From the IMG/VR virus record IMGVR_UViG_3300003322_000571, positions 286,090 through 350,089 of that record: a stretch of DNA of 64,000 nt; one strand, written 5' to 3'. The position numbers were made by a program, and so were the translations under genes. Of this stretch, positions 18,367 to 62,033 are shown piece by piece. Under the pieces are notes generated by a model. The model worked only from the letters and a program-made list of their open reading frames with translations, was not told the origin of the DNA and made no database searches. Numbering within the stretch: the stretch's first letter is position 1; every line of letters begins with the position of its first letter.

Positions 18367-18449
18367 TGGTTCTCCTTTGCTCTGTACGAAACTATTTACG
18401 CTGGAGAAATAGCAGTGATCTTTACCCGTATACCCAGGGACCGGAAATG

Positions 18450-18473
18450 AAGGAAGGCGCCGAAGCGCCTTCC
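18450..18473 (-). terminator. GC-rich hairpin ending tmRNA transcript
   Basis: AGGAAGGCGC-TTCG-GCGCCTTCCT. Confidence 0.7.
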
Positions 18474-18795
18474 TATGATACTGTTGTTATCGGGGTATCA
18501 TGCCCTCAGTCAAGCATTAAGCTGCGAGACGGAAGTTACCTTCATTTGCATTTAGGTTGTTTTCTTGAGTTACGGTCTTCGCCACCGGCATGCGCCATCC
18601 ATCTCAGTAACTCTGTCGAAACCAGGGCAGGCCCATGACAGAAGATTCAACGCTACGTTACTTTTCGAGGGCCTAGGTTCCCTTTAACCGTTTCACGCAG
18701 CACTAAACCTTCTGTGGTGGACCTGGCGGGAATCGAACCCGCGTCCAAAATCCTTCAACATCAGTCGAATTACATGCTTCATCTGCTTGCGCAGA
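18450..18795 (-). ncRNA. ssrA: circularly permuted (two-piece) tmRNA; tag ANEGNFRLAA
   Basis: acceptor piece ...GACGCGGGTTCGATTCCCGCCAGGTCCACCA (ends 18715) precedes coding piece GGGCCTGCCCTGGTTTCGAC (starts 18634); 7-bp acceptor stem with G3-U; tag codons 18549-18517. Confidence 0.93.
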
Positions 18796-18827
18796 TACGT
18801 CTATTTAAGCATAGAACCCTAAAACTA

Positions 18828-19418: not shown

Positions 19419-21116
19419 TTATTGACATGCGACGCATTCGTCTTTGTCTTTGGAAGCCTGAACACCAGCCTTACTGTACACGTAGTACAAACCAAGAATG
19501 TCGTCGTTCAGGATCGCTTCGCGGTGAACATCGTTGATGTACGATTCATCTTCACCAGCAGAGAAGAACACATTCAAACTCTGCCATTGATCGATGTATT
19601 TACCGCGCGTAGCTGCCATGCGAATAACTGCATGCTGATTGATTTCGAAAGCAGTTTTGAACACGTCTTTCTCGTGATCAGTCAGCCAGCTAACGCCCTG
19701 GACAGAGCCCATTGCATCGCGCACTTCTTCGATATTCTTCTTGTTGTACACGCCCTTCTTCTTCATCAAGTCGAGCAAGAACGGGTTGACACGGTCAACT
19801 TCACCGCCAGCTGTACGTTGTGTGAACACCATAGCCGTATCAGGATTGATACCTTCTGAGTAACCACCCATAATCAGAGCAGTACTCTTTGTCGGCGCAA
19901 CTGCCAGCAAGTGGCTATTTGCACGACCGTATCCCTTCAACCATTCTGGTTCGCCCCACCATTCAGCGAGCTTCTTCGTTGCGATCTCAGCTTCCGAGCG
20001 CATGTGCTTGAAGATTTCTGCGTTTAGCAGGCTGGCATCAAGCGACTCGAACGGCATCATTTCCTTTTGGAACAGCGAATGCAATCCAAGCAAACCAAGG
20101 CCGAGAGCACGTGACTTCTTCGTGAATGCAACAGCACGTTCAAGACCACGAATGTTCTTAGCACGTTCAATGAATTCCTGTGCGACAGCGTCAAGGAACA
20201 CAATACCGACTTGAACCAAGTCCGTATCCTTCCAGTCGTGGTAGAATACTGCATTGACGCTAGCGAGGACGCACGTATATGTGTAGTCTACGCTGGAATG
20301 CAATGTAATTTCGTTACACAGCTGGGCAGCCTTAACATCGAGTCCGTGGTCAAGATACCACTGAGGACGCTTTGCGTTGACCTTGTCAGGGAAGAAGAAG
20401 TAGCCCTTGCCGGTAACCATCTTCGTCTTCATCACTTTAGCGTAACGCTTCAGTGCTTCAGGATCGCGTGCCGTTAGACGTTCAATGAACTTGTTCGACA
20501 GGTTCCAACCAATGTTGTTACCGTCTGGGTTTTGTTCAAGATACGTGACTACTTCGTAGAAGTCACCGTGATCGATTGGTACGTAGCCAGCCCAAGAACC
20601 ACGACGTGCGGTACCTTGCGAAACATACTCCATGTCCTTCTGGAAACCTTCGATGATAGGAAGGATACCAGACGACTTGCCACCACCAAAGATTTCAGCA
20701 CCGCGAGGACGAACGTCACCAAGATATCCAGAAGTTCCAAAGCCATACTTCGTCAGCATAGCTGTTTCAAGTTTAGCTTGGTAGATTCCGTAGATTGAAT
20801 CGTCAACGTACGTACCAGCACACGAAACAGGCAAACCTCGCGTCGTACCAACGTTAGCGAGAACAGGAGTAGAAGGGCTGAGCCAACCTTTCCACATTAC
20901 GTCGAAGAACTTCTTCGTCCACAGTTCAGGATCCTTCGTATGCGTTGCCAAAGTACGTGCAATTCGCATGTATTGTTCGTACGGATTGGCAGCCTGGTAC
21001 AGGTACTTTTCTTTGAAAAGCTGCCACCCACCTGTACTCCACCATTCAGGCATTAGACCTTCTGCCTGTAGTTTCTTTCGCTCCTCCGAGAGCTGACGGT
21101 AAATGTTATCACTCAT
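19419..21116 (-). CDS. nrdA: ribonucleotide reductase class Ia alpha subunit (no ATP cone)
   Basis: SPSTPVL, VSC, QLCNEI, AVAPTKS, C-terminal CVACQ. Confidence 0.95.
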   Translation of the reverse strand: MSDNIYRQLSEERKKLQAEGLMPEWWSTGGWQLFKEKYLYQAANPYEQYMRIARTLATHTKDPELWTKKFFDVMWKGWLSPSTPVLANVGTTRGLPVSCAGTYVDDSIYGIYQAKLETAMLTKYGFGTSGYLGDVRPRGAEIFGGGKSSGILPIIEGFQKDMEYVSQGTARRGSWAGYVPIDHGDFYEVVTYLEQNPDGNNIGWNLSNKFIERLTARDPEALKRYAKVMKTKMVTGKGYFFFPDKVNAKRPQWYLDHGLDVKAAQLCNEITLHSSVDYTYTCVLASVNAVFYHDWKDTDLVQVGIVFLDAVAQEFIERAKNIRGLERAVAFTKKSRALGLGLLGLHSLFQKEMMPFESLDASLLNAEIFKHMRSEAEIATKKLAEWWGEPEWLKGYGRANSHLLAVAPTKSTALIMGGYSEGINPDTAMVFTQRTAGGEVDRVNPFLLDLMKKKGVYNKKNIEEVRDAMGSVQGVSWLTDHEKDVFKTAFEINQHAVIRMAATRGKYIDQWQSLNVFFSAGEDESYINDVHREAILNDDILGLYYVYSKAGVQASKDKDECVACQ

Positions 21117-23394: not shown

Positions 23395-24477
23395 TTAGTT
23401 GTCAACTTCGAATCCCGTGAGGCCCTCTTTCAAGCCGTTTGGAATAACCTTTTGCCCCATCATCCAGTGTTGGGTCGTTTGAATATGATTAGCTCGGACG
23501 TATTTGCCAACCATTGATTTGAACTGACTGTAGTGGAAAGGCTCGTCAACGCGTATGACGTAGCCTTCAATTTCGCCACCAGCAGCTTTTCGTTCTTTCT
23601 CGAGTTTGGCGTAGATACTTTCGATCTTTTGACGATCATATTCACCCCAGTAAATGACTGGGCACGGTTTAATACCCAGCAACTGGAACCATTCCAGTTG
23701 TTGAGTCCAATCAAGCATCACATTCTTATCGTTCCATACGGCGAATCCGTATGCGTACGTTTCCAAATCTTCATACTTGATCGAATGCTTTGCGTACACG
23801 TTTTCAACGTTAATACGCCATCCTTCGGGAATATCTCCTTGAATCCGGCCGTGCAAGGCACGAACCCAGTTTCGAGAAGGATGCCCTCCAGATGTTACAC
23901 TACGTGCATGAATATGATCATTATACATCGTAGTGTTTTCACCATCAAGTTTCTCCATCACAACGACGCGTTTACCGTTGAAGACGTTAACATCAGGCAT
24001 CATCCGGTCGTCACTGTGCATACCAGGACTCCACGGCAGATGATACGTCCGTGGGTACTTGACATGTTGGACGAACAGTCCAAGAACACCGCCCTTGTCG
24101 AGGATCTTTTGAACACTTTCGTCTTCAAACAGGTCACCACGGAGACGAGTTCCGTTATCCATGATAATATTACCCCACTTGTCATACACTTGATCCTCGT
24201 ACAGATGAGGTGGCAAGACGGGTTTGGTAATACCAAGTAGTGCTCTGATATTTTCAACAGAGAACGTGTCATGAGTTGTCATTTCACATTCAAGATGATG
24301 TTCCTCGCAGACGGAAGCACCATTGTTCAAATAGTAGCCGCCGTCAGGGAAGAGTCGTCGTTCGAGAATGTGATGTGCATCGACTGCAGGTTTATCGCAG
24401 AAGATGCAAGTGTGTTTGTCACGTGCGAACACACCTTCGCGGAATTGATCCCGCGTAAGGAGTTTTGTTCCATCCAT
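23395..24477 (-). CDS. HNH-like domain fused to ATP-dependent RNA ligase (Rnl2-like)
   Basis: CIFC..DAHHILERR..NGASVCEEHH, then KYPRTYHLPWSPG, EKLDGEN, EGYVIR, KYVR. Confidence 0.8.
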   Translation of the reverse strand: MDGTKLLTRDQFREGVFARDKHTCIFCDKPAVDAHHILERRLFPDGGYYLNNGASVCEEHHLECEMTTHDTFSVENIRALLGITKPVLPPHLYEDQVYDKWGNIIMDNGTRLRGDLFEDESVQKILDKGGVLGLFVQHVKYPRTYHLPWSPGMHSDDRMMPDVNVFNGKRVVVMEKLDGENTTMYNDHIHARSVTSGGHPSRNWVRALHGRIQGDIPEGWRINVENVYAKHSIKYEDLETYAYGFAVWNDKNVMLDWTQQLEWFQLLGIKPCPVIYWGEYDRQKIESIYAKLEKERKAAGGEIEGYVIRVDEPFHYSQFKSMVGKYVRANHIQTTQHWMMGQKVIPNGLKEGLTGFEVDN

Positions 24478-43381: not shown

Positions 43382-43452
43382 TCTCTCAATGTTGAACAAA
43401 GCGCTCTTAATTGAGCGCTGCTTTCAAATTAAGTTGGTCAATTTTACCCTTG

Positions 43453-43481
43453 TTGACTTAATTTGAAAGCAGTGATAAAGT
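43453..43481 (+). promoter_or_regulatory. sigma70-type promoter for large ncRNA
   Basis: TTGACT-17-TAAAGT. Confidence 0.6.
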
Positions 43482-43487
43482 TCACTC

Positions 43488-44425
43488 ATCGATTCAAACA
43501 ACGAAGTTAATTCAGCGATGTTTGATCAAAGCCAAGCTGTGAAGGGACTGGTTCGATTCCAGGTGTGAGTAACAGAAGCTCTATCAAGGACGGAGCGTCA
43601 TTGTTTGGTACGTTCTTTACAATTCAAGATTTGGGGCATAGCCCGGATAACTCCAGTGATGGAGCCAAAGCCTTAATGCTACATTATGGCGCCAGAAATG
43701 GTCAATCTATGCAAGCTCAGTTCTCTCCAGAAATGGAGGCTTCGTCGGGTTATCTGGCGGAGATAACTAGGAAATGAGTGTTGTGGAAAGAACACGAGGT
43801 CAAGTGCCACGCAAGTGGGAACACAACTGAGTGGAAAGCTGGGTGGTACCGGCTTCACAACAAACCAAACTCATCAGTAGGTAAGAACAAGAGTAGTGTC
43901 AATGTCCAAGCCGGCAAGCGAGGGCTATGATGCAGTTTGAGAGGTTAGTGGTGTGTGAAACATCATTGGTCTTGAAAAACAGTTGAGTAAGCGGCAGCTG
44001 AAAGACATGGAGGTGTGTTGTATTTTGGTGGTCAAAAGCCATCGAAGCAACTGGACGCACACATCTTCGTAGCGATTTCCGGTTAAAAACCGGGTAATTC
44101 ACGGTTTATGAATATCTTTAACGCAAAAGTTGCGTCCGGTGTTGTGTGAAAGTGGCTTAATTCTGTGGCAGCAATGTAACACAGACGTCTGAAGCTCGCA
44201 AGGCAGAGGATGTTGAAAGTGAGTCGCACGTTTGGCTAGGCATAGTCGAGCGGTAGACAAACTTCGAATAGCACAACGCGACGAGGTAACCGCCAACCTC
44301 TAAATAAGGCAGTCATGCAAGGTACTCTCATGAGAGAGTGGATAAGTGTAGAACCAATGGTGTAGCAGCCAAAGGATAATGACACAAAAGTCTTGTACCA
44401 ACCGATGTAATCTCAGTCGTTTGAC
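43488..44425 (+). ncRNA. large (~940 nt) ornate noncoding RNA (GOLLD/ROOL-like class candidate)
   Basis: no credible ORF between promoter and terminator; many short hairpins (GCAA, GAAA and ATGA loops) and a T-arm at 43548-43563. Confidence 0.7.
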
Positions 44426-46778: not shown

Positions 46779-46855
46779 GCTCTCTTAGCTCAATTGGTTA
46801 GAGCGGCGGTCTCTAAAACCGACGGCTACGGGTTCGAATCCCGTAGAGGGCACCA
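46779..46855 (+). tRNA. amber suppressor tRNA (anticodon CTA)
   Basis: full cloverleaf, loop CT-CTA-AA, encoded ACCA. Confidence 0.88.
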
Positions 46856-50756: not shown

Positions 50757-51884
50757 ATGGAACTGTACAATCAACTGATGGCGCTGACGCAAGATGGCGA
50801 TGCTTTCTACTTCCAGGACTTCGAACTGGATCGTGTGAAGTATCGTATCTTCAACTACCGTCTCGCTTCGTACAGCGACTTCCTGAAGCCAGGCGCTCTG
50901 GAGTGCCGTGGCATCATGTTTGATATCACCGACGGTATTGCTGAACTTGTTGCACGTCCGATGCAGAAGTTCTTCAATCTGAACGAAAATCCGATGACGA
51001 TGAACCTCGATCTGTCGCAAGTCGACACGGTTGAGCTGAAGGCTGACGGTTCGTTGATGTCAACGTTCATTCATTGGACTGATTCTGGTCCGATGCTTCG
51101 TCTCAAGTCGAAGGGTTCGCTGTTCTCTGAACAAGCAATCGACTCGCTGAAGTGGCTCACTGACCACGATCCGGAACTGAAGCATCATCTGTTCATGGTG
51201 ACGCTCGATGGCTACACGGTCAATCTCGAGTGGTGCGCTCCGTTCAACCGGATCGTGATTGGTTATGAAAAGCCGCACCTGAAAATCCTGAACGTTCGCA
51301 AGATGGAAACCGGCGAATACATGCCGCGTGTTGTGATCGAAGATCGTTTCCGTAACCCGGATTGGATCATCGACCGCGTCCGTACAGACGGCCTCAACAC
51401 GGCTGATTTCGTCAAGTCGATCCCTGCGCTGCAAGACGACATTGAAGGTTACGTGTGCCGTATCGGTGACCTGTGGTTCAAGGTCAAGACCGAGAAGTAC
51501 ATGTCGCTTCACCACGCGAAGGATTCTGTCAACAATCCACGTCGTCTGTTTGAAGCAATCATCGACGAAGGAATCGATGACCTTCGCTCAATGTTTGCAC
51601 AAGATGCACTCGCGATGAAGTTGATCGACGAGATGCAAGAGAAGGTTACACGGATGTACAACAGTGTTGTTCGTCAAGTGGAAGACTACTACAGTGCGAA
51701 CAAGGCGAAGGAACGCAAGGATTATGCGATCGGTGCACAGACGCTGTCGATTGACGGTGTCAAGCTGATGTCACTCGCGATGAACCTGTACATCGGCCGT
51801 GATCCTGGTTTCAAGGACTTCCTCAAGGGGAAGTACAAGGAACTCGGCTTCAAAGATACGTCGGTTGACAAGAAAGAAGACTGA
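50757..51884 (+). CDS. RNA ligase 1 (T4 Rnl1-like)
   Basis: IFNYRLASY, LECRG, PMQKFFNLNE, KADGSL, EGYV, WFKVKT. Confidence 0.92.
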   Translation: MELYNQLMALTQDGDAFYFQDFELDRVKYRIFNYRLASYSDFLKPGALECRGIMFDITDGIAELVARPMQKFFNLNENPMTMNLDLSQVDTVELKADGSLMSTFIHWTDSGPMLRLKSKGSLFSEQAIDSLKWLTDHDPELKHHLFMVTLDGYTVNLEWCAPFNRIVIGYEKPHLKILNVRKMETGEYMPRVVIEDRFRNPDWIIDRVRTDGLNTADFVKSIPALQDDIEGYVCRIGDLWFKVKTEKYMSLHHAKDSVNNPRRLFEAIIDEGIDDLRSMFAQDALAMKLIDEMQEKVTRMYNSVVRQVEDYYSANKAKERKDYAIGAQTLSIDGVKLMSLAMNLYIGRDPGFKDFLKGKYKELGFKDTSVDKKED

Positions 51885-56652: not shown

Positions 56653-56829
56653 TGTGTTTAAGACTGTCGCACGCCAAAAGGCACAGTGGGTTAAGTCTTA
56701 CTTCATGTCTTTACTTGTTGGCGCAAGTATAACATGTTGTCCATTAGTACAGTGGTAGTACGTCGCCTATAACGGCGAAGACGCGGGTTCGATTCCCGTA
56801 TGGAATTTTTGACGACAGCCTTAAACACA
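56653..56829 (+). ncRNA. end-clamped RNA containing a tRNA-like domain (56740-56804)
   Basis: 17-bp terminal helix (1 mismatch); D, anticodon-like (6-nt loop) and T arms inside. Confidence 0.6.
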
Positions 56830-56875: not shown

Positions 56876-56913
56876 TTCGAAGGTGACAGTCATAAATATC
56901 GTCAGAGGTGTTT

Positions 56914-57330
56914 ATGGAAACAAAAGTGTGTTCGGCTTGTAAGGTTAACAAATCGTTGAGTGAGTACAACAAGTACAAGCGATCAAAGGATGGGTTAGAT
57001 TATCGTTGCAAATTGTGTCAGCGCAATTCAAACAAGAGTTGGGTTGAAAACAATTGGGAGCGTAAGCTAGCACAGCAAACTGATCGACGTTCTCAACTAC
57101 TGACACAGTTGAGAGAGTTCAAAAGAACTGCTGGTTGTAGATGCTGTCCTGAAACCGAGCCGGTGTGCTTGGAACTGCATCACCTTGATCCGAATGAGAA
57201 GGAAATTGATCCTTCAAGTATGGTAAGTCAAGGTTGGAGCTGGGAACGCATGAAGAGTGAAATTGATAAGTGTGTAGTCTTGTGTAGTAACTGTCACAAG
57301 AAAGTACATGCGGGATTGTTGGAAATTTAA
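56914..57330 (+). mobile_element. free-standing HNH homing endonuclease in tRNA array
   Basis: CSAC..CKLC, CRCC..LELHHLDP..KCVVLCSNCHKKVH; CATAAATA at 56891, AGAGG RBS. Confidence 0.85.
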
Positions 57331-57332
57331 TT

Positions 57333-57407
57333 GGTCTCAAGGTGTTCATGGACGCATACGGCACTGTCACTGCTGAGGAGGGGGATCGTTACCCCCTGGG
57401 ACCGCCA
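57333..57407 (+). tRNA. tRNA-Asp(GTC)
   Basis: cloverleaf, variant T loop ATCGTTA, CCA. Confidence 0.85.
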
Positions 57408-57410
57408 AAT

Positions 57411-57583
57411 GTCTTCTTAGTGTAAAGGCTCAATGCTAGCTGTTGAGGTTACGGAAATGAAAGACTACAATTAATCGGTTGTGAATCGGCCGATAACTCA
57501 TCCGCGAGATTGTAGGAGATAATCAACGTGATGCACCTCATTCCCTAAGAATGAATGAGATGGTTCGATTCCATCAGAAGACA
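57411..57583 (+). ncRNA. tRNA-shaped RNA with ~109-nt structured D-loop insertion
   Basis: acceptor GTCTTCT/AGAAGAC, D stem GTGT/GCAC, anticodon arm TCATT-CCCTAAG-AATGA, T arm. Confidence 0.7.
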
Positions 57584-57588
57584 CAAAT

Positions 57589-57670
57589 GTAGTTGCTGTC
57601 CTCGGAGAGACTTGCTCGCGAATACGCTTGCTGAAAAGTACCTGAGTAGGTTCGAATCCTACCAACTACA
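57589..57670 (+). pseudogene. degenerate tRNA-like element
   Basis: acceptor GTAGTTG/CAACTAC and T arm intact; anticodon arm unpaired. Confidence 0.55.
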
Positions 57671-57671
57671 C

Positions 57672-57834: not shown

Positions 57835-57916
57835 GGATCATTATACTCCTATGGACGGAGACCAGATTGTAATCCTGGTGCCTTTGGCTGGGTAGGTTCG
57901 ATTCCTACATGATCCA
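57835..57916 (+). tRNA. tRNA-Tyr(GTA)
   Basis: loop TTGTAAT, variable arm. Confidence 0.75.
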
Positions 57917-58124: not shown

Positions 58125-58196
58125 GGGGAGGTCGTTTAGCGTTCAAGACACTGGCCACTAAAGCCAGCGACGATGGTTCGAATCCATCCCTCCCCA
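58125..58196 (+). tRNA. tRNA with CTA anticodon and non-canonical A33
   Basis: CTGGC-CACTAAA-GCCAG; full cloverleaf; no CCA. Confidence 0.65.
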
Positions 58197-58202
58197 CAAA
58201 TT

Positions 58203-61949: not shown

Positions 61950-62033
61950 GCCCAGGTGGCGGAATTGGTAGACGCGTAACATTGAGGGTGTTATGTCCGA
62001 AAGGACGTGCAGGTTCGAGTCCTGTCTTGGGCA
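61950..62033 (+). tRNA. tRNA-Leu(GAG)
   Basis: canonical type II cloverleaf. Confidence 0.9.

Follow-up and report, generated by a model that had tools for sequence, protein, structure and literature searches.

Why would a phage tRNA gene carry more than one hundred bases of folded RNA in place of its D-loop, and is such a domain removed from the transcript or kept in it? The question arises from a window of 64,000 nucleotides (positions 286,090 to 350,089, the last 64 kb, of the 350,089-bp IMG/VR phage record IMGVR_UViG_3300003322_000571, which has direct terminal repeats and comes from a root metagenome). The genome of this giant soil phage encodes more than 60 tRNA genes, a tmRNA of the beta-proteobacterial type and a GOLLD RNA. 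The candidate gene occupies positions 57411-57583 on the + strand of the window, within a long and dense + strand tRNA array, and begins 3 nt after a tRNA-Asp (57333-57407). An earlier note, made from the sequence alone, had described a cloverleaf with a perfect acceptor stem, a D stem, an anticodon arm and a T arm, and with four helices in the D-loop, and had proposed either a novel spliced tRNA, in view of RNA ligases encoded by the phage, or a tRNA-scaffolded functional RNA. The observation made in that note is correct, as every element it listed is found in the sequence at the stated coordinates, although its ATCGG/CCGAT helix is really 8 bp long (ATCGGTTG/CGGCCGAT) and a fifth insert helix (TTACG/CGTGA) had been missed. 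Its interpretation is partly supported, as discussed below. The parts of the gene are as follows, with H1 to H5 denoting the helices of the insert and J2/3 and J3/2 the two strands of the internal loop between H2 and H3.

57411-57417 (+), 5' strand of the acceptor stem (GTCTTCT), pairing with 57576-57582
57418-57419 (+), tRNA positions 8 and 9 (U8, A9)
57420-57423 (+), 5' strand of the D stem (GTGT), pairing with 57533-57536 across the insert
57424-57428 (+), 5' part of the D-loop (AAAGG), read as A14-N-N-G18-G19
57429-57447 (+), H1, the variable hairpin of the insert (CTCAAT..GTTGAG)
57449-57453 (+), 5' strand of H2 (TTACG), the base of the 83-nt core, pairing with 57527-57531
57454-57464 (+), internal-loop strand J2/3 (GAAATGAAAGA)
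57465-57471 (+), 5' strand of H3 (CTACAAT), which closes the three-way junction, pairing with 57509-57515
57474-57494 (+), H4 hairpin of 8 bp (ATCGGTTG-TGAAT-CGGCCGAT)
57495-57508 (+), AA followed by the H5 hairpin (CTC-ATCCGC-GAG), the invariant core
57509-57515 (+), 3' strand of H3 (ATTGTAG)
57516-57526 (+), internal-loop strand J3/2 (GAGATAATCAA)
57527-57531 (+), 3' strand of H2 (CGTGA)
57533-57536 (+), 3' strand of the D stem (GCAC)
57538-57554 (+), anticodon arm TCATT / CCCTAAG / AATGA, with its loop at 57543-57549 and CUA at positions 34-36
57555-57558 (+), variable loop (ATGA)
57559-57575 (+), T arm (GATGG-TTCGATT-CCATC)
57576-57583 (+), 3' strand of the acceptor stem (AGAAGAC) followed by the discriminator A57583

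The minimum-free-energy fold of 57411-57583 gives this same architecture; however, its z-score against shuffled sequences is only -2.07, and the decisive evidence is therefore comparative. Standard tools do not report the locus, since default ARAGORN, Rfam at gathering thresholds and Rfam at E<=10 identify it neither as a tRNA nor as anything else. Searches of IMG/VR, JGI metagenomes and GTDB genomes with exact or degenerate words from the conserved core gave only chance coding hits or nothing, and blastn against GenBank phages returned no relative of the element. The 406-aa protein encoded 2.4 kb upstream was used instead; although it has no relative among GenBank phages, its homologues led to syntenic contigs in public assemblies. 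Contigs L016 and L017, in which this protein is about 68% identical, hold a 190-nt homologue (L016:12191-12380, here L016h), again directly after the second tRNA-Asp. The more distant contig L111 holds the first 98 nt of another homologue (L111:14947-15044, here L111h) before the contig ends. Two wastewater runs, X7 and X8, contain short contigs covering tRNA-Asp and the candidate with the insert retained, and this wastewater relative carries 11 substitutions and a 16-nt insertion. The comparison thus rests on only three complete sequences, one of which was rebuilt from listed differences, and one partial sequence, all from uncultured phages.

In the alignment of the candidate with L016h (L016:12191-12381), the cloverleaf and five insert helices comprise 50 pairs, of which 99% are paired, and ten pairs show compensatory double changes: two in the acceptor stem, one in the D stem, one in H1, two in H2, one in H4 and three in the T stem. 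Controls in which the partners were slid by 1-3 columns gave 36-50% paired and 0-3 such pairs. The D-stem pair matters most, as G57420-C57536 becomes A-U in L016h (ATGT compensated by GCAT), so that the two strands flanking the whole insert co-evolve. The acceptor stem and H2 (CTATC/GGTAG in L016h) each show two one-sided changes in addition to their compensatory pairs, H1 is 8 bp in L016h (ATCAACGC/GCGTTGAT) with a compensatory first pair, and the T stem is AGCGG/CCGCT in L016h. H3 is identical in L016h but reads GATTAGC/GCT.. in L111h, which gives two further compensatory pairs, and the first pair of H4 is A-U, C-G or U-A in the three homologues. Without and with L111h, 97-99% of pairs are paired; with L111h included, 12 pairs covary over the acceptor, D, T, H1, H2, H3 and H4 helices, and 0 of 500 shuffles reach the observed values. 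RNAalifold predicts the same structure unaided. The wastewater variant keeps every helix, as its 16 extra bases lengthen H1, which still pairs, and its G57530>A change turns a U.G pair of H2 into U-A. G-U pairs occur only in the + strand reading, so the + strand is the RNA strand. This is far more than chance would give.

The D-loop opens with five nucleotides, A-N-N-G-G, in all three aligned homologues, and T8 is likewise kept in the candidate, L016h and L111h; A14, G18 and G19 are canonical tertiary-contact residues of tRNA. The 109-nt insert follows immediately, in the region of positions 20-20b, and ends one base before the D stem. Whereas H1 varies in length and sequence, the core is exactly 83 nt in both complete phage copies and comprises H2 (5 bp), an 11x11-nt purine-rich internal loop (GAAAUGAAAGA / GAGAUAAUCAA), H3 (7 bp), and a three-way junction with H4 (8 bp, loop WGAAU) and H5 (CUC-AUCCGC-GAG). 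The purine-rich GAAAGA / GAAGGA of the internal loop is conserved in all homologues, GAGATAA of J3/2 is shared with L016h, and G57516-A57517 could form tandem sheared G.A pairs with G57463-A57464, although this is an inference. The stretch AACTCATCCGCGAG is identical in the candidate, L016h, L111h and the wastewater relative. The blocks GAAAGA and AACUCAUCCGCGAG are the same in all four lineages even where H3 and H4 covary, which points to a constraint beyond helix formation. The core is 79.5% identical between the two phages and the tRNA body 76%, compared with 60-95% for orthologous tRNAs of the same arrays and 57% for the downstream spacer; the core is therefore as conserved as bona fide tRNAs.

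The anticodon arm is abnormal. Its stem is invariant, but the loop is CCCUAAG in the candidate and CACUAAG in L016h, so that CUA is kept at positions 34-36 and A at 37 whereas position 33 is C or A and never U. C32 and G38 can pair, which would leave a loop of five bases. Ordinary decoding is thus doubtful, and at most weak or conditional decoding of UAG is expected. When the insert is deleted in silico, ARAGORN calls tRNA(CUA) for both sequences, and a tRNA(CUA) of ordinary length at 58125-58197 in the same genome has the same T stem and an A33 loop, CACUAAA. It was also tested whether the three CUA-type genes reflect reassignment of TAG. They do not, as standard-code ORF coverage is 90%, TAG makes up 10% of stops and TAG-joined ORFs are not in excess. 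The variable loop is 4 nt in both the candidate and L016h, and CCA is encoded after the discriminator in L016 but not in the candidate.

A different parsing of the locus is given by ARAGORN in intron mode, which calls a class II tRNA-Leu(GAG) with an 84-nt intron (57449-57532) between positions 37 and 38 and takes the TCATT/AATGA hairpin as the long variable arm. This reading looked attractive at first, since its spliced loop UUGAGGG would be identical to that of the phage's own tRNA-Leu(GAG) at 61950 and the discriminator is A73. However, it fails in the homologues: in L016h its D stem loses the first pair and three of its five anticodon-stem pairs break, ARAGORN in intron mode finds nothing in L016h, and the 16 extra nucleotides of the wastewater relative fall inside its D stem, position 26 and anticodon stem. 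The TTGAG of its supposed anticodon loop is the covarying 3' strand of H1, and even in the candidate there is a C.C mismatch in the stem and two G.U pairs in the D stem. The reading is rejected and considered very unlikely, whereas the cloverleaf of the earlier note, with the insert in the D-loop, is supported.

Whether the insert occurs apart from this gene was examined in several ways. A CM finds the full element in the phage's own genome and in L016/L017 and, truncated, in L111. The related contigs L018, L020, L021 and L030 have the same His-Ser-Pro-...-Asp-Tyr array but neither body nor insert, so that they lack the whole gene. CM R1 found no member in 35 Rnl1-linked IMG/VR loci or in 25 whole related IMG/VR records, although the latter search had no positive control within it, and the core model R2 found none in further Logan contigs. 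An early idea placed the insert in one intron family with the inserts of own-genome genes at g1021-1249 (Tyr) and g1586-1717 and of L004:15954-16087, because they share words such as TAATCG and TG(CG)TAG. This was rejected, since R2 finds only the candidate in the phage's own genome and the shared word belongs to a recurrent motif, TGCGTAG-N6-7-GTTACTTC, present at several intergenic sites. An SD-like AGGAG followed by GTG/ATG in the insert would encode the peptide MHLIP, but this only mini-ORF is not conserved in L016h and was dismissed, and a promoter-like match inside the insert (57443-57471, 9 of 12) is at chance level.

The best explanation, held about as likely as not, is that the gene encodes one composite stable RNA, in which a tRNA-shaped body of the tRNA(CUA) type permanently carries the folded module, an 83-nt core plus a variable hairpin, in the variable part of its D-loop directly after G19. 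What the analysis establishes is that the cloverleaf and five insert helices are maintained by compensatory evolution, that the elbow-forming residues U8, A14, G18G19 and the T-loop are kept, that the core has a fixed length and invariant blocks, and that body and insert are inherited together in the sequences found. The remainder is inferred from anatomy, including retention of the insert in the mature RNA, aminoacylation, decoding and function. In this view, the tRNA body would provide the transcript with its ends and stability through RNase P at the 5' end, 3' trimming or CCA addition, and an L-shaped fold. The module would project from the outer corner of the elbow, where D-loop positions 20/20a/20b normally point into solvent, and would be the working or recognition part. 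It may be a docking site for a phage or host factor or a ligand, or it may be a gate on the elbow, the surface used by RNase P, the ribosome and other tRNA readers, although no partner, ligand or activity has been identified. An insert next to G19 might, however, clash with elbow readers, which would argue for its removal before use. No metatranscriptome was found to hold the phage, as the runs listed as RNA share only conserved tRNA words or are probably DNA; the latter include the two wastewater runs labelled RNA-Seq that hold the unspliced form. The 261- and 242-nt wastewater contigs begin and end near the tRNA-Asp/candidate borders, which could hint at an RNA origin but is equally explained by assembly breaks at repeated tRNA words and is not used as evidence.

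Of the two functional alternatives in the earlier note, the tRNA-scaffolded RNA fits better, whereas nothing was found that specifically favours a spliced tRNA. A new kind of D-loop intron, cut out by its own catalysis or by a host or phage nuclease and sealed, for example, by the phage Rnl1/Rnl2 ligases, nevertheless remains possible though unlikely. The insert is a compact, self-contained fold closed by H1 and H2 at its borders, its deletion leaves a sequence accepted as tRNA(CUA) in both homologues, and phage tRNAs with "enigmatic introns" are on record (PMC6784885). The ligases invoked by the earlier note are real, one gene being of the Rnl1 type and two of the PF09414 type, and could seal a cut tRNA; however, Rnl1 is equally present in the same neighbourhood in the related contigs examined that lack the element, so it is not evidence for splicing of this gene. 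Against an intron, no insert-less allele was found in the relatives searched, no pairing between insert and exons is seen, and the excision product would have a 6-nt D-loop without A21 and no U33.

A processing or self-cleaving element, which would direct a cut inside the D-loop and yield two RNAs (a 5' leader-like piece and a 3' tRNA fragment, or a freed small RNA), is considered improbable. The invariant blocks exceed what helices alone need and the purine-rich internal loop looks like a tertiary or active-site motif, the latter being an inference. However, a cmscan of 57424-57535 against Rfam 15 at E<=10 gave only a 9.8-bit noise hit, with no match to a self-cleaving ribozyme or riboswitch family, and the covariation of the acceptor and D stems shows selection for the two halves staying paired in one cloverleaf. 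A dead tRNA gene disrupted by a chance insertion or recombination scar is very unlikely. The array does hold several aberrant tRNA-like genes and tRNA fragments and the anticodon loop is abnormal, but this reading is contradicted by compensatory changes in seven helices and by a core of fixed length and 80% identity between phages whose neighbouring 406-aa protein is only about 68% identical.

The shape and size of tRNA are among the most constrained features in biology, and known departures are losses (mitochondrial tRNAs), long variable arms, or introns that are removed. A conserved, covarying fold of 110 nt in the D-loop is therefore unusual whichever explanation holds. If the domain is retained, the tRNA elbow can carry a functional module, which would give a natural counterpart to engineered tRNA scaffolds and a possible new way for phages to control or exploit translation. 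If it is removed, it would be a bacterial-world tRNA intron that fits neither group I nor the bulge-helix-bulge (BHB) type, and so a new splicing route. A further reading, offered only tentatively, is that this is the first natural "expansion segment" of a tRNA and a new class of composite tRNA/ncRNA rather than an intron, in which the mature L-shaped tRNA(CUA)-like RNA keeps the three-way-junction module on its elbow and the phage uses it to gate the molecule (conditional charging, ribosome entry or UAG read-through) or to dock a phage or host factor onto a tRNA-shaped handle. The case also shows that standard tRNA finders miss or mis-parse such genes, and counts of phage tRNAs and of "tRNA introns" in large phage genomes should be read with care.

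How does the element compare with known systems? With canonical bacterial or phage elongator tRNA (RF00005), in particular phage suppressor tRNA(CUA), it shares the 7-bp acceptor stem, 4-bp D stem, 5-bp anticodon and T stems, U8, A14, G18G19, the TTCGATT T-loop, the 4-nt variable loop, the discriminator A and a place in a phage tRNA array. It differs in a folded D-loop of 109 nt (125 nt in L016h) instead of 7-11 nt, and in C or A in place of U33, although A37 is the expected purine. The enigmatic introns of Lak megaphage tRNAs (Devoto et al. 2019, PMC6784885) are likewise intervening sequences of unknown type in tRNA genes of a very large phage, conserved among related phages and without an Rfam class. 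Those were predicted with eukaryote-mode tRNAscan-SE, and some have intron-less alleles. Eukaryote-mode tRNAscan-SE places introns in the anticodon loop, whereas here covariation places the insert in the D-loop, no insert-less allele was found, and the host clade and genetic code also differ.

Archaeal non-canonical tRNA introns are also on record (PMC4090602, PMC3241643). They can lie in the D-loop and are removed through a BHB motif by the splicing endonuclease. At this locus, inspection showed that neither register of a 4-bp helix flanked by 3-nt bulges can be drawn next to the D stem (AAAG against ACGT, GGCT against TGAT), and the splicing endonuclease EndA (PF01974) and RtcB (PF01139) are absent from the 350-kb phage genome. 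The host is bacterial, as the phage carries a beta-proteobacterial-type tmRNA, and the insert is long with a conserved three-way junction rather than a short hairpin. Group I introns of bacterial and phage tRNA genes are also structured RNAs interrupting a tRNA gene, but they lie in the anticodon loop and are about 200 nt or longer, with a P1-P9 core, a U.G pair at the 5' splice site and a terminal G. None of this is seen here, where the 5' flank ends in GG, no P1-like exon pairing is present and there is no RF00028 hit at E<=10. The tRNA-like domain of tmRNA and the small stable RNAs of the phage T4 tRNA cluster (species 1 and 2, rnaC/rnaD) have a non-tRNA function riding on tRNA-like ends encoded among phage tRNAs, and the element resembles them only in that idea. 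tmRNA replaces the anticodon arm and carries a tag ORF with pseudoknots, whereas in the present gene all four arms are kept and the extra domain lies in the D-loop.

Further atypical tRNA-like genes, other RNA genes and protein genes were found around the candidate (the tRNA-like gene with the D-loop insert) and elsewhere in the same phage genome:

window 57589-57671, tRNA-like gene directly downstream of the candidate
window 58125-58197 and 46779-46855, two ordinary-length tRNA(CUA) genes
window 57835-57915, class II, Tyr-like tRNA
window 56738-56807, tRNA with a shortened or odd anticodon loop
window 56908-57330, HNH-type ORF between the two tRNA-Asp genes
own genome 1021-1249 (L002:1021-1249), tRNA-Tyr(GTA) with an insert
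own genome 1652, 35298 and 62453, window 63822, and L004:16022, recurrent motif
window 50757-51884 (+), about 23497-23970 (-), and own genome 69143-69739, RNA ligase genes
window 43419-43573, tRNA-like stretch
window 44008-44419, GOLLD RNA
window 18448-18817 (-), tmRNA

The downstream tRNA-like gene has a perfect 7-bp acceptor stem (GTAGTTG/CAACTAC), a T arm and a 3-bp D stem, but an aberrant middle (TTGCTCGCGAATACGCTTGC...), and it is missed by both ARAGORN and Rfam. A related hairpin (TTGCTCGAATACAGCGAGC) followed by a T arm sits at the syntenic spot in two related contigs, L018:13455-13567 and L020:9640-9748. The phage, which uses the standard code, has two tRNA(CUA) genes of ordinary length, the first of which (58125-58197) has A33 (loop CACUAAA) and the same T stem as the candidate. 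A CUA tRNA upstream of Rnl1 is conserved in contigs L016, L018, L020, L021, L030 and L112. The Tyr-like tRNA, whose anticodon loop is ATTGTAA, is missed by ARAGORN and RF00005 and scores only 28.6 bits, against the tRNA-Sec model. For the tRNA at 56738-56807, ARAGORN reports the loop as 'ataa', and RF00005 gives 44.8 bits with a deletion in the loop.

Inserts were also observed in other tRNA-like genes. The tRNA-Tyr(GTA) carries a 141-nt insert in the anticodon loop as called by ARAGORN in intron mode. In L004, only the 3' part of this gene with the last 12 nt of the insert is present, and in L112 the 3' part (19823-19857) lies upstream of the 5' part (19933-19996), which may reflect a split or permuted gene, or a tandem copy. 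The motif TGCGTAG-N6-7-GTTACTTC recurs in tRNA-rich and intergenic regions and also lies inside the 56-60-nt inserts of the tRNA-like genes at own genome 1586-1717 and L004:15954-16087; it is probably a phage promoter or processing signal.

The HNH-type ORF has C..C...HH...N...CH motifs but no Pfam hit. The same ORF lies between Asp genes in L018 (12933-13352), which lacks the candidate, so it is not linked to the insert. The earlier note had counted two RNA ligases in the phage; there are three, one of Rnl1 type and two of PF09414 type. The Rnl1 gene lies a few kb upstream of the tRNA array in contigs L016-L021, L110-L112 and L117.

The GOLLD RNA is full-length (207 bits), and just upstream of it is the 155-nt tRNA-like stretch with a ~53-nt insert in the anticodon region. 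The phage-encoded tmRNA, with tag ANEGNFRLAA, is of the beta-proteobacterial type, which hints at the host clade.
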